64,000 nucleotides of DNA, taken from the NCBI RefSeq assembly GCF_000002075.1, contig NW_004797292.1:1594861-1658860 (forward strand), written 5' to 3'. The translations under genes and the position numbers were made by a program. The DNA is from Aplysia californica. Taxonomy: Eukaryota. Below the pieces are notes generated by a model, which did not search any database, was not told the DNA's origin, and worked only from the letters and a program-made list of their open reading frames with translations. How positions within the stretch are numbered: position 1 is the stretch's first letter; the number at the start of each line of letters is the position of its first letter. This document shows, piece by piece, positions 16,121 through 57,639 of this stretch.

Positions 16121-16933
16121 ATGAAGCTGCTAATTCTTGGCTCAGCCATCGCGGAGATGGCATCTGCTGTGCCAGTCCCAACGGAAAAAAGAAGAGACCT
16201 CCCCGATTTCGGACCTGCGATTCAGAACTTTATCCAGCAGATCAAGGACGCTTTCCCTCATGGGAATAGCAAGAGGGGTGCCATCGTTGATGCTGCTGAT
16301 AAGATCCAAGAGATCATTGATGGAATCCAACATGCCATTCACCCAGACGACGCTAAGAGAGACCTTCACGATACCGCAGTAGCAATTGAGAATGTAATTG
16401 AGACCATCAAGGATGCTTTGCTTCCCGGAAATAATAAGAGAGGTGCTATCGTTGATGCTGCTGATAAGATCCAAGAGATCATTGATGGAATCCAACATGC
16501 CATTCACCCAGACGACGCTAAGAGGGGTGCCATCGTTGATGCTGCTGATAAGATCCAAGAGATCATTGATGGAATCCAACATGCCATTCACCCAGACGAC
16601 GCTAAGAGGGGTGCCATCGTTGATGCTGCTGATAAGATCCAAGAGATCATTGATGGAATCCAACATGCCATTCACCCAGACGACGCTAAGAGAGACCTTC
16701 ACGATACCGCAGTAGCAATTGAGAATGTAATTGAGACCATCAAGGATGCTTTGCTTCCCGGACAAAAGAGACAGAAACCCGATTTCATTTCTGCTATTGA
16801 AGATATTATCCAGCAGATCAAGGACTCTTTAGCTCCTGGAGATAGCAAGAGGGGTGCCATCGTTGATGCTGCTGACAAGATCCAAGAGATCATTGATGGA
16901 ATCCAGCATGCCATTCACCCAGACCAGGCCTAA
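16121..16933 (+). CDS. Secreted multi-peptide precursor, paralog G1 (270 aa; signal peptide + 9 KR-delimited acidic amphipathic peptides of 3 types)
   Basis: Intact ORF; MKLLILGSAIAEMASA signal-like N-terminus, VPVPTEKRR pro-piece. Five GAIVDAADKIQEIIDGIQHAIHPD(D/Q)A, two DLHDTAVAIENVIETIKDALLPG.., plus DLPDFGPAIQNFIQQIKDAFPHGNS and QKPDFISAIEDIIQQIKDSLAPGDS. Splice acceptor 8 nt before ATG; AATAAA downstream. Confidence 0.92.
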   Translation: MKLLILGSAIAEMASAVPVPTEKRRDLPDFGPAIQNFIQQIKDAFPHGNSKRGAIVDAADKIQEIIDGIQHAIHPDDAKRDLHDTAVAIENVIETIKDALLPGNNKRGAIVDAADKIQEIIDGIQHAIHPDDAKRGAIVDAADKIQEIIDGIQHAIHPDDAKRGAIVDAADKIQEIIDGIQHAIHPDDAKRDLHDTAVAIENVIETIKDALLPGQKRQKPDFISAIEDIIQQIKDSLAPGDSKRGAIVDAADKIQEIIDGIQHAIHPDQA

Positions 16934-17131
16934 TTAATTATACTCGATATACTAACTCAACAGCCTCCCCCTTCTCCCCCCCCCCACCCCCCCCACCCCC
17001 ACAACAACAACAAAAAACAAAAAACAAAACAAAAGAAAACAACAACGACAACCACAAATGAAACCATTATTCAAATCAGTATGCTTACACACATTGGCTT
17101 GTAATTATCTTGAATTCTTTTTACAAGGTGA

Positions 17132-17137
17132 AATAAA
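17132..17137 (+). terminator. Probable polyadenylation signal of gene 1 (AATAAA)
   Basis: ~200 nt after the stop and followed by a T-rich tract; the aligned position in gene 3 reads AATACA (57818-57823). Confidence 0.6.
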
Positions 17138-53934: not shown

Positions 53935-56488
53935 CAATGGTCACCACATATATTGCGACATAAGGTTTTAGACTTGTTCTAAACTAATTTGGGGTTGCGC
54001 GTTTCAAAAATGTGATTAGTTTTTGCGTATCGTGTCAAGTTGTTGCTGTATGAAAAAATTGCCTATTTTCAAGTCGATATTACACATTCGGGGTTTTTCA
54101 TACAGCGTAGCCTCATACAACGTAGTCTCTAGTTCGATTTAAAAGCTCGCTTCTTTAATGAATTAGAATAACATTCAACCATAAAGATGTGACATTTTAT
54201 TAATGATGGGTAACTTATCCATAGTAGTTACATTATGGCAATGTTTTTGTTCTATACACGTAACAAAACTCGAACGTAGACTCTCATTAAGCCTGCAAAA
54301 TTATGGCCCAATCACGATCCATTTTGACTTAAAATTCTTACAAGGAAATGCCAAGAAACATTTAAAAAGCATTGATTTGCAAATATAGACCGCTCATTGT
54401 GGTCAACTTGGCCTTTAGTTAAAGATAAGAAGCGAATTTTATACAAATGAACGTCAAATCCCTGTTGTTTCAGTCAGGTTAAATTCAATAGTTTGATAAG
54501 GATCTGTTTAAGGATCTTTGACTTCATTATTGAAAAGAAATATTTTTTAAAGATACATGTATGATTCCAGGATAACGTTTTGTCGCAGTAGGGGAAAGGA
54601 ACTTCCACTACAGTCGCAGCAGAAAATGATTTTAAGTTACTAAGACCATGAGGTCATTAACTAAAATGATCTATCAAAATCCTAAGATCATTCAGAGTTG
54701 TTATCAAGATCTTCAAATAATTGCATTTGGAAAAGCTTGACATGTTTTGAAACTCCAATTTTTTTTACATCATAGGGTAGTGTTTCACCAAGACGCACCG
54801 GGGCTTTTTAACATGCATTAGGTGTGTCTGATTACCGTCCGAAAGAATGAGGAATTTTCTTAGACAGTCAATAAGAAGTCTTAAATGTGTGCTACTCAAT
54901 AATGGAAATTAATATTTATGTCTCGACGTAGTAGAATCAGGCTCTCGTCAATTTTTGGTCCTGTGGATTTATTAGTATCACCTAAATGCTTAACCATTTG
55001 CCGTACTTTCCATGAAAAAGAATACCCATCTATCTTCAATAGAAGTCGACATATTTTCGATTGAAGGAGGTGTGGTCACCTGGTTTAAGTAGTAAAGTTA
55101 GCGAGGAAACTGCCGCCAAAGCTCGGTAACTTCGTAGCTTGAGAGTCGTTGAAAACTGAGAAATTACATATTTGTGCTTTTAATTAACGTTATTGGTCAA
55201 ATTCATACGGAAATGTGTTTTACATGGACATAAAAGGTGTTGAGCCAAAAAACAAAAATTTGAAAAAAAAAAGTCAAACTTGCGGTAAAGTGCCTGTTTC
55301 TTCGATTTCAATACTTTGACGAGCGACAGATTTCACCACGACGCCTCACATTTATTTGGGTCCGTTCCTACATTTTACATATCTGCTTAAAGAACTTCGG
55401 GATAGTGTGAATATCTGAAAATTGTCAACTTCCTACAAGGGCAGTACGGTGGCTATATAAAGTGTCCATGTTTCCATCGTCTCTTGGATAGTCAGAAGAA
55501 TGAAAAACACATCGTTGGAAACAAAAGAGATGGTTAATAACAGAATGTCAGAAATAAATCACTTGTGGATGGTGATAAAAATCATATTTCCTCTCTTTCA
55601 TATCAAGTTAAGCTTTATGAAACAAATTGGGAAAGTCCTGAATTTTGAAAGGTTGGGGGTGGGGGGGTGTTCTGTTTCAAGTACATAGGCGCCGCTTTTC
55701 CTAATTTCTGTCATTAGAAAATAGGGGTTGGTGTTTTCGACGGTCCTCAAGTAGGAGAGCTGATGAGACATCCATATTTAATACTCAATTGAGTGGCAAA
55801 GAGAAAATAGCTTGGAAAACGTTTGCGACTGCGATATTAGACTTTTTGGGCGGCAGAAAAGCAGAAAATTACTAGAACTTTGTCAAAACTTTGCATGGTA
55901 TGTACCATCTTTTGGGATGCAACATGAGCATCAAGGTTCATTTCACTGGAAAATCGTTAAGATAAATTTCCTCAAAACTTTGATGACGTCAGTGATCAGC
56001 AAGGTGAAAGATTTCTCCATAACATTGAAATTATGGAGACATGGTGTCAAGACCGACTGTACATCAAAGTGATGGTTGATAACTGTTGGGGGATTTCAAA
56101 GGAATTTCTAGATACAACGCACTGGACACAACGTCGCAAAAGAAAATGTCAGTCATGACTACGCTTCGTCCCAACTTGAGTACGTGAACTACTTTTTAAT
56201 GTTGTGCCCAATGTCATTGTAAAATTGAGGATTTTCACAATTTGATTGAATAACAAGATGCTTTCGTGTCTCACATTTTGCTTTTACTTGCTCCGAACAA
56301 TATTGGGCTGTTTTTTTCATTTGGGCTAACTTAATTGCATACAGCAAGCAAGTTGTCATGACGTAGAGGACAAACTAGTTTTGATAGACCAGAAGTAACA
56401 CCATTTTTAGATTCAGCGACCTAAAATTACCACAAATCAAGTCTCAAACGCAAGGCTGCAGAAAAAAGCTAAATTTTGTTGCCCAGTG
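53935..56488 (+). mobile_element. Decayed Chapaev3-like DNA transposon in gene 3 intron (contains MITE M1 at 54920-55349)
   Basis: Imperfect TIRs caatggtcacc.. / ..gttgcccagtg. C-terminal transposase remnant ~55800-56090: EKIAWKTF..FLGGRKAENY..LLGCNMSIKVHF..DKFPQNFDDVSDQQGERFLHNIEIME..MVDNCW. The gene 1 intron shows the empty site (gataatttgaatg, ~12870). Confidence 0.78.
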
Positions 56489-56814
56489 ATTTGAATGTCA
56501 AACCAAGTCGATGTGAAAACAAGTGGGGATATAATGTTAACCCTTAACATTTTGCATCTGGGAGCTAAAAATATCATGAGGGGTATAATGGGGATGAAAG
56601 GGAAAATGTCTCAATTTTGTTGTTTTACAAATTGTATATTTAAAGTTAATAAACTATATTGGTCTGAAAATCATATCATGTTCGAACAACAAAGTGGAAC
56701 GTTCTATTGTTGCTGGGTATATTCCACACCTTACCGTCAGACAAATATATAAATAATCTCTGGTTATGAAATCAGGTTTGACAAATTTAATACATTGTAC
56801 TTTCAGATCCCACG

Positions 56815-57639
56815 ATGAAGCTGCTAATTCTTGGCTTAGCCATCACGGCGATGGCATCTGCTGTGCCAGTCCCAAAGGAGGATAGAAGAGACCTCCCGGA
56901 TTTCGGATCTGCGATTCAGGACATTATCCAGCAGATCAAGGACGCTTTCCTTCCCGGGAATAGCAAGAGGGGTGTTTTCGTTGATGCCGCTGATAAGATC
57001 CAAGAAATCATTGACGGAATCCAACATGCCATTCACCCAGACCAGGATAAAAGGGGTGTTTTAGTTGATGCTGCTGATAAGATCCAAGAAATCATTGATG
57101 GAATCCAACATGCCATTCACCCAGACCTGGATAAAAGGGGTATTTTCGTTGATGCTGCTGATAAGATCCAAGAAATTATTGACGGAATCCAACATGCCAT
57201 TCACCCAGACCAGGATAAAAGGGGTGTTTTAGTTGATGCTGCTGATAAGATCCAAGAAATCATTGATGGAATCCAACATGCCATTCACCCAGACCTGGAT
57301 AAAAGGGGTATTTTCGTTGATGCTGCTGATAAGATCCAAGAAATTATTGATGGAATCCAACATGCCATTCACCCAGACCTGGATAAAAGGGGTGTTTTCG
57401 TTGATGCTGCTGATAAGATCCAAGAAATTATTGACGGAATCCAACATGCCATTCACCCAGACCAGGATAAAAGGGGTGTTTTAGTTGATGCTGCTGATAA
57501 GATCCAAGAAATCATTGATGGAATCCAACATGCCATTCACCCAGACCTGGATAAAAGGGGTGTTTTCGTTGATGCTGCTGATAAGATCCAAGAAATCATT
57601 GATGGAATCCAACATGCCATTCACCCAGACCAGGCGTAA
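56815..57639 (+). CDS. Secreted multi-peptide precursor, paralog G3 (274 aa; signal peptide + 9 KR-delimited peptides)
   Basis: MKLLILGLAITAMASA|VPVPKEDRR|DLPDFGSAIQDIIQQIKDAFLPGNS-KR, then eight 84-bp units G(V/I)(F/L)VDAADKIQEIIDGIQHAIHPD(Q/L)(D/A). Confidence 0.93.
   Translation: MKLLILGLAITAMASAVPVPKEDRRDLPDFGSAIQDIIQQIKDAFLPGNSKRGVFVDAADKIQEIIDGIQHAIHPDQDKRGVLVDAADKIQEIIDGIQHAIHPDLDKRGIFVDAADKIQEIIDGIQHAIHPDQDKRGVLVDAADKIQEIIDGIQHAIHPDLDKRGIFVDAADKIQEIIDGIQHAIHPDLDKRGVFVDAADKIQEIIDGIQHAIHPDQDKRGVLVDAADKIQEIIDGIQHAIHPDLDKRGVFVDAADKIQEIIDGIQHAIHPDQA

Follow-up and report, generated by a model that had tools for sequence, protein, structure and literature searches.

A stretch of 64,000 nt of the Aplysia californica genome (contig NW_004797292.1, positions 1,594,861 to 1,658,860; the window in the following) harbours three intact genes, designated A, B and C, each of which encodes a predicted secreted precursor made of nine or ten tandem peptides separated by Lys-Arg (KR). 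We consider it likely that the three genes are tandem paralogs of a secretory multi-peptide precursor family which is restricted to heterobranch gastropods, is cut at KR and has a high-output, non-neuronal source. This is a real and expressed family of convertase-type multi-peptide precursors that apparently was not described before. The kind of precursor, with many peptide copies and processing at dibasic sites, is known; the family itself is apparently new.

The open reading frames (ORFs) of gene A (16121-16933, 270 aa), gene B (28438-29358, 306 aa) and gene C (56815-57639, 274 aa) are located on the plus strand and are uninterrupted; the uncleaved proteins would have a mass of 28-31 kDa. 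The initial annotation of this locus had described three intact paralogs with a signal peptide, a pro-piece and 9, 10 and 9 peptides bounded by KR or RR. Re-parsing gave the same result: all three ORFs are open, and a check of the runs of N in the window found none inside them. For gene B, the program-made ORF list starts at an in-frame ATG at 28390; this ATG is not the start, because it precedes the conserved splice acceptor at 28427-28429. As read from the sequence, the signal peptide consists of MK, a hydrophobic core and A-S-A in agreement with the -3/-1 rule, and it is kept across the 13 family members of an alignment. It is followed by a pro-piece of 6-7 residues ending with KRR or RR (VPVPTE-KRR in gene A). 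Splitting at KR and RR results in 9 (A), 10 (B) and 9 (C) peptides, altogether 28 with a length of 24-29 aa, among which there are 16 distinct sequences. According to Tandem Repeats Finder, an 84-nt unit is repeated 9.4 times in gene B (97% matches) and 7.9 times in gene C (95% matches), while gene A has a more mixed 84/165-nt repeat pattern. Gene A alternates two types of peptides: type 1 has D-L-H/P-D at its start and ...L-P-G-N-N at its end, and type 2 is the 26-mer that had been quoted in the initial annotation, with a predicted mass of about 2.7 kDa.

The peptides had been predicted to be acidic amphipathic helices without Cys and without a C-terminal Gly for amidation, and this holds true. 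None of the 28 window peptides contains Cys, Trp or Tyr, and a Gly precedes KR at none of the 28 junctions. The net charge ranges from -1 to -6 and is -3 or lower in all peptides except the first one of gene A. Type-2 peptides contain two His and the first peptide of gene B three, while some type-1 peptides have none. Over the first 22 residues the hydrophobic moment amounts to 0.35-0.54, compared to approximately 0.18 in shuffled sequences, and the amphipathicity exceeds that of the shuffles in all 16 distinct peptides at p <= 0.05 (in 13 of them at p <= 0.005). The best hydrophobic periodicity, 100-105 degrees, is helical and near heptad. When the peptides are drawn as a helical wheel, the polar face carries the two His and the acidic residues at positions 5, 8, 12, 15, 19 and 22, which correspond to the heptad positions c and f. 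Single-sequence AlphaFold2 modelling placed mostly one helix in each unit and loops at most junctions, two neighbouring units being parted by a one-residue kink only, and yielded no confident tertiary fold (predicted local distance difference test, pLDDT, 53; predicted template modelling score, pTM, 0.35). This predicted picture fits beads on a string, not a folded repeat protein.

That the architecture is the one of a dibasic-processed multi-peptide precursor, as had been proposed, is seen best at the junctions. All 31 Arg residues of the A, B and C proteins are in dibasic sites. The junctions are encoded by AAGAGA (13 times), AAAAGG (7), AAGAGG (5) and AAAAGA (1) for KR and by AGAAGA (3) for RR. 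Thus, the differing KR codons, from which selection on cleavage had been deduced, do exist (four KR codon pairs, and AGAAGA for RR), but their weight is small and corresponds to about three independent observations, because the repeats within one gene are near-identical recent copies with a synonymous divergence (dS) of approximately 0.1. The case for cleavage is stronger if based on the family as a whole, since the junction KR is invariant family-wide and Gly-Lys-Arg stands at the junctions in pond snails (see below). In an alignment of 13 members from several species, which share a mean identity of 21%, the junction K and R are the sole invariant columns.

The peptides themselves are under constraint, too. 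Between units of different paralogs dS is 0.28-0.58 and the ratio of non-synonymous to synonymous divergence (dN/dS) is 0.30-0.48, and thus moderate purifying selection acts on the peptides. These dS values also mean that A, B and C are true paralogs and not haplotype copies. A set of 24 distinct type-2 peptides from 14 sources (Aplysia and marine plankton) was picked with a pattern that imposed G1, D/N5 and hydrophobic residues at positions 3, 10, 14 and 17. Outside this pattern A7 is present in 24 of the 24, H22 in 20, Q11 and P23 in 19 each, H19 and D24 in 18 each and G16 in 16.

Relatives were found in other snails and in plankton. An exhaustive phmmer search with a diverse paralog as the query against 1.8 billion cluster representatives gave 14 matches, the weakest of which (P0014) is an unrelated helical-repeat protein. 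The relatives include a hypothetical protein of Bulinus truncatus, an unnamed protein of Lymnaea stagnalis, and marine metatranscriptome and metagenome sequences from Tara Oceans and JGI. The plankton relatives, which may stem from pteropods or veligers, were assembled from at least four whole-plankton metatranscriptome samples, and in one Tara sequence the N-terminal half is almost that of the window 26-mer. The Bulinus locus is a single open frame of 768 aa with a similar signal peptide and 28 junctions, and the Lymnaea locus a single open frame of 732 aa, also with a similar signal peptide, and 27 junctions. Gly-Lys-Arg, the canonical signal for cleavage plus amidation, occurs at 27 of the 28 junctions in Bulinus and at all 27 in Lymnaea (together 54 of 55), and all 28 Arg residues of the Bulinus protein are in junctions. 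When searched back against the Aplysia genome, the Lymnaea protein matched family loci only.

A six-frame search of the Aplysia genome (927 Mb, 4332 contigs) revealed at least 17 loci of the family, spread over 7 scaffolds, a copy number that rests on a gap-rich assembly: five on the window scaffold, at least 7 on scaffold C202, two on C596 and one each on C92, C115, C156 and C117. Less certain are L014 and L017, for which no Met-initiated frame with at least two dibasic sites was obtained. Initially, the tandem family of the window was seen as a candidate peptide-secretion system. The tandem family stands; the self-contained system does not, since this is one cluster among the at least 17 loci and the family is present in other heterobranch snails. 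The signal/pro region is nearly fixed among the family ORFs (MKLAILCLALATVASGLYIPAEEKR in most), while the repeated peptides, each of them KR-bounded, differ greatly between loci and are thus hypervariable. The number of units per precursor varies freely from 4 to 28. Approximately 170 peptides are predicted for the whole family, mostly of 20-29 residues; 108 of them are unique, and 98 of these 108 have a negative net charge.

The genes are essentially unannotated, since none of ten paralogs (A, B and C included) has an exact copy in a collection of 15 billion proteins. Protein C has a single named relative, the 'uncharacterized protein LOC101851700 [Aplysia californica]'. It corresponds to a locus approximately 10 kb upstream of the window (L003; G000:C22:1584357-...), which is the fifth and only annotated member of the cluster. 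In the genome its ORF enters an assembly gap that follows the third type-2 unit. The last approximately 29 residues of the RefSeq model depart from the repeat pattern and seem to have arisen because the gene was modelled around this gap. It is likely that the family was left unannotated because tandem-repeat genes with a single coding exon in gap-rich DNA were masked or skipped. Two other loci deviate in layout. In L020 (P0002; G000:C202:546398-547174, minus strand) a short acidic piece alternates with a His-containing peptide that begins with G-F-F-G-K-F-L and ends with Gly-Lys-Arg, an amidation signal present at four sites; with this layout the paralog comes nearer to classical amphipathic defence peptides than the window copies do. 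L019 (G000:C117:1050884-1051333) is a distant member with a unit of approximately 45 residues, one Cys, Arg outside the junctions and W-K-R as bounds, and it may mark a separate subfamily.

The three genes are apparently built alike, with a putative TATA promoter, a short exon 1 without coding sequence and a single coding exon; for gene A the exon structure is confirmed by RNA. Approximately 3.1-8.6 kb upstream of each coding exon there is a conserved block composed of TCACGAC, ATATAAA, about 70 nt and a GT donor (12543-12647 in A, 19731-19851 in B, 53609-53723 in C), and in all copies a CAG acceptor is located 8 nt ahead of the ATG. The features of the locus, all on the plus strand, are:

12543-12572, plus strand: putative core promoter of gene A with TCACGAC at 12543 and the TATA box ATATAAA at 12566-12572, suggested by three-way conservation with the upstream regions of B and C.
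12595-12647, plus strand: non-coding exon 1 of gene A, the 3' end exact (RNA contig) and the 5' end estimated from the TATA box; donor G/GTGAGT at 12647/12648.
12648-16112, plus strand: intron of gene A, 3465 nt, with a GT..AG RNA joint and no N gap.
16113-17155, plus strand: exon 2 of gene A with an 8-nt 5' leader, the coding sequence (CDS) 16121-16933 and a 3' untranslated region with AATAAA at 17132.
19731-19851, plus strand: presumed promoter and non-coding exon 1 of gene B, aligned to the gene A exon 1 region only; TCACGAC twice (19731/19739), TATA box at 19759, exon 1 end at 19851 with the donor GGTTAG.
28430-29358, plus strand: coding exon of gene B with the acceptor CAG at 28427-28429 and the CDS 28438-29358, 10 peptides.
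53609-53723, plus strand: presumed promoter and non-coding exon 1 of gene C, aligned to gene A exon 1; TCACGAC at 53609, TATA box at 53635, exon 1 end at 53723 with the donor G/GTGAGT.
56807-57639, plus strand: coding exon of gene C with the acceptor CAG at 56804-56806 and the CDS 56815-57639, 9 peptides.
58784-58969, plus strand: degenerate fourth copy, found by tblastn of the three proteins on the window, by translation and by the genome search (C22:1653632-1653817).

The degenerate copy consists of a unit of type 1 and a unit of type 2, in which the frame is interrupted by stop codons, and its upstream part is lost in the gap 58641-58780. There are no runs of N in the intron of gene A or in the presumed one of gene C (53724-56806). 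Two gaps (23587-23778 and 27458-27643) are located in the presumed intron of gene B (19852-28429), and therefore the link between its exons 1 and 2 is presumed only. Since gaps lie between the paralogs, their order and spacing rest on scaffolding. In all three promoters TCACGAC is found 20-28 nt ahead of the TATA box, and it is doubled in gene B. It is a candidate site for a factor behind tissue-specific expression.

Parts of the window are contained in 20 sequencing runs from six studies with four organism codes, and four public runs were compared with the gene A region (12300-17300). In run X5 a contig with a depth of 25000 joins 12645/12647 to 16111/16113 with GT..AG ends, and the run is deep over exon 1 and the coding exon (15974-16975) with no coverage of unique intron sequence. 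This joint and the coverage pattern show that there is abundant spliced mRNA of gene A. Run X1 covers all bins including the intron and resembles DNA, run X6 has a low depth (3-20) on the gene A CDS, and the raw polyA RNA run X21 (14.8 million reads) has no read on exon 1 or on the coding exon. Expression of gene A is real and differs strongly among the samples, the tissues of which are coded and not named. At the 3' end of the gene, low-complexity C/A runs break the RNA contigs. The intron of gene A contains a high-copy repeat at approximately 13470-15810, where the contigs of the DNA-like run X1 sum to a depth that exceeds the flanks by a factor of hundreds to thousands and many loose ends are found at 14151/14182 and 14912/15674. 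Reads of RNA runs land there as well. Probably this is a transposable element, which is transcribed elsewhere, too.

Based on these data, a processing pathway can be proposed. The precursor would enter the endoplasmic reticulum co-translationally and the signal peptide would be cut after A-S-A. A proprotein convertase of the subtilisin/kexin group, similar to PC1/3 and PC2, would then cut after each KR; the sites do not correspond to the furin consensus, because there is no Arg at P4, and genes with a convertase P-domain are present in the Aplysia genome. Subsequently a carboxypeptidase would trim K and R. The predicted products are 28 peptides with a negative charge and a length of 24-29 residues; there are 16 distinct sequences among them, and most contain His. 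Each unit would represent one amphipathic helix, the tail of which contains Pro and is followed by Lys-Arg. Amidation would be an additional step for the peptides set free in the pond-snail relatives.

We infer that the source of the peptides is a non-neuronal, high-output secretory one. We lean to a bulk non-neuronal product because of the gene multiplication, the combination of a conserved pre-pro region with hypervariable peptides, and the occurrence of relatives in plankton metatranscriptomes; the bulk exocrine product favoured in the initial annotation would agree with this. Most likely the peptides would act in host defence, in surface protection or as a water-borne signal. It is tempting to speculate that the pattern of acidic residues and His on the polar face enables switching by pH or metal. 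Only tentatively do we extend this to a new class of animal secreted effectors: anionic heptad peptides with an acidic/His face (ending with ...D-G-I-x-H-x-h-H-P-D), which would be switched by pH or metal to self-associating or membrane- or surface-active helices and would be made in bulk by heterobranch snails, from plankton to pond, for defence, antifouling or water-borne signalling.

Several points weigh against this interpretation. For the window precursors, cleavage at KR is deduced from sequence, and their peptides are devoid of the amidation Gly. Splicing is confirmed by RNA for gene A only, the depths are summed over repeats and thus inflated and are not an expression measure, and the tissues of the runs are coded. 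The repeats inflate the E-values between these proteins. A strongly anionic character is not typical of defence peptides that act on membranes, and the peptide core shared by Aplysia and plankton would fit the ligand of a specific receptor and a defence product equally.

The last point leads to the strongest alternative, according to which the genes encode precursors of neuropeptides or peptide hormones, with the same processing in neurons or endocrine cells and with specific receptors. Multi-copy KR-bounded precursors are generally known to be typical of Aplysia neuropeptides, and a single run with one abundant transcript would suit a sample of ganglia. A receptor-ligand (neuro-endocrine) role stays alive because the peptide core is conserved across species, with dN/dS below 1, and because amidation signals are present at almost all pond-snail junctions. 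Nevertheless, we regard this alternative as unlikely. In Bilateria, genes for neuropeptides are as a rule conserved and present in one or a few copies, while here at least 17 loci with hypervariable peptides are found; no Pfam family is matched consistently, and such long, acidic, heptad-like peptides are unusual for neuropeptides. In addition, the polyA run X21, the tissue of which is not named, lacks exon reads, and it may be telling that the genes are unannotated despite the heavy sampling of nervous-system transcripts in Aplysia.

Compared to this, it is clearly less probable that the proteins remain uncleaved and are secreted helical-repeat proteins, which form a bundle or bind lipids or surfaces like apolipoproteins or LEA/HSP12-type proteins and in which KR is a loop motif. 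The heptad-like periodicity of 100-105 degrees, whole-protein Pfam scores above the cut-offs (HSP9/HSP12 and other helical families) and the loose similarity of an Atlas model of one paralog to four-helix bundles speak for such proteins. However, the Pfam scores are sums over repeats, which drop below the cut-off in a two-unit piece and point to unrelated families in different members, and neither AlphaFold2 (pTM 0.35) nor the Atlas (pTM 0.30) gave a confident fold. Moreover, if there were no cleavage, it would be difficult to account for the restriction of Arg to the junctions, for the invariant KR and for the Gly-Lys-Arg found at 54 of 55 junctions in pond snails. In addition, the unit number is free to vary from 4 to 28. 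Finally, that the ORFs stay open by chance, in tandem-repeat DNA without a function or through an error of the assembly, as the gaps and repeats of the region and the absence of the ORFs from protein collections might suggest, is hardly credible in view of the gap-free ORFs, the spliced RNA with a canonical intron (a joint which excludes contaminating DNA), the promoter, donor and acceptor conserved in three paralogs, the dN/dS below 1 and the homologues in other species.

A match to a known family was sought, and none was found in Pfam, in the PDB sequences, in two very large protein collections, in the ESM Atlas or in the searchable literature. The named homologues in the protein-collection searches are 'uncharacterized', 'hypothetical' or 'unnamed' proteins only, word-indexed protein searches returned family members only, and the PDB sequence search gave no match. 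In the ESM Atlas the best feature score (0.76, a fungal cluster) was below the lead threshold, and the Atlas model of one paralog (pTM 0.30) resembles four-helix bundles loosely (template modelling score, TM, 0.4-0.55). Ten peptide strings of 10-12 residues, LOC101851700 and the Bulinus and Lymnaea accessions are absent from the searchable literature, which does not include supplements and subscription journals.

Several candidate assignments were rejected. The whole-protein Pfam matches (HSP9/HSP12, DUF7692, HBM, GIT1_C and others) contain no single significant stretch, and different members match different, unrelated families. For HSP9_HSP12 (PF04119), whole proteins reach 34-49 bits by repeat summing, while a two-unit piece reaches 13.6-15.9 bits against a cut-off of 26.3 bits. 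A J-domain reading of the tripeptide 'HPD' is not supported by any DnaJ match in Pfam. The class of cationic amphipathic antimicrobial peptides does not fit either: the amphipathic helix is present, but the net charge is negative (-1 to -6).

Between genes B and C other repetitive sequences are found. Long trinucleotide microsatellites at 31000-32600 and 37900-38060, which read as poly-Leu, poly-Tyr, poly-Ile and poly-Ser ORFs, abut assembly gaps and probably caused them. Pieces of a Ty3/gypsy-type pol are located at 39364-41863 (minus strand), with Pfam matches for reverse transcriptase and for reverse transcriptase-RNase H. An integrase-like ORF in the same region and on the same strand has no Pfam match, and the pol is split over separate ORFs and hence broken. 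A Cys/His-rich gag-like ORF is present at 37462-38208 (plus strand). At this gypsy-type element the GC content is 0.45-0.47, compared to approximately 0.35 in the surroundings. At 45566-46796 (minus strand) there is a reverse transcriptase similar to those of long interspersed nuclear elements (RVT_1, E 4e-18), which is broken over three overlapping ORFs.

The identification of this family is important for several reasons. Aplysia is a model in which peptides have been catalogued for decades, yet its gene set lacks a family that comprises at least 17 loci and is transcribed abundantly in one sample or more. Further, the family reaches Lymnaea, a model in neurobiology, and Bulinus, a vector of schistosomes, a field in which peptides secreted by snails are already being investigated as cues for parasites. 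Should release take place, some 100 natural variants of an unusual scaffold, anionic and helical and with a pair of conserved histidines, would be at hand, and these could be used in tests for antimicrobial, metal-binding, self-assembly and semiochemical activity.

Among known systems, the multi-copy neuropeptide precursors of Aplysia itself come first. FMRFamide, enterin, buccalin and pedal peptide are released from precursors with KR- or RR-bounded copies by PC-type convertases and a carboxypeptidase. The genes described here share with them the organism, the signal peptide and the many tandem copies bounded by KR or RR. However, Aplysia neuropeptides have 4-17 residues, whereas the peptides described here have 24-29 and are strongly anionic, presumably helical and, in this cluster, non-amidated. 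No sequence similarity is known, and the sea-hare family is a large multigene one with hypervariable peptides.

The precursors of amphibian skin peptides (magainin, PGLa and the dermaseptin superfamily) combine a conserved signal/pro region with hypervariable amphipathic helices and are exocrine bulk products. A conserved pre-pro region, hypervariable helices, dibasic cleavage (predicted in our case) and multiplied genes are common to both, and some amphibian members are multi-copy, too. No homology is known, and the amphibian peptides are cationic, whereas the charge of the sea-hare peptides is -1 to -6 (mostly -3 to -6). In fungi, Kex2-processed repeat proteins such as Ece1 of Candida albicans give rise to peptides one of which, candidalysin, acts as an effector in the form of an amphipathic helix. 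Their layout, a signal peptide and a string of KR-ended peptides on a single exon, is almost the same, but they belong to another kingdom and show no known homology, and the sea-hare units are many near-identical, acidic copies. The dermcidin-derived peptide DCD-1L is an anionic amphipathic helix with His which forms Zn-dependent oligomers. The sea-hare peptides are also predicted to be anionic amphipathic helices, with Asp/Glu and two His on the polar face, which is a resemblance only: no homology was found, and the dermcidin precursor is single-copy and differently processed.

The last group to be compared is from a snail. P12 of Biomphalaria glabrata and other precursors from snail-conditioned water are snail-specific, have signal peptides and several dibasic sites, and release acidic, helical peptides which were found in mucus or water and have a semiochemical effect (PMC6358113). 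We considered P12 as a relative and rejected it, since the sequences in the supplement of that paper are unrelated: the P12 group has other signal peptides and Cys-containing units and does not repeat the sea-hare motifs. In their general design the two groups agree, both being snail precursors, in the sea hare predicted to be secreted, with a signal peptide and several dibasic sites.

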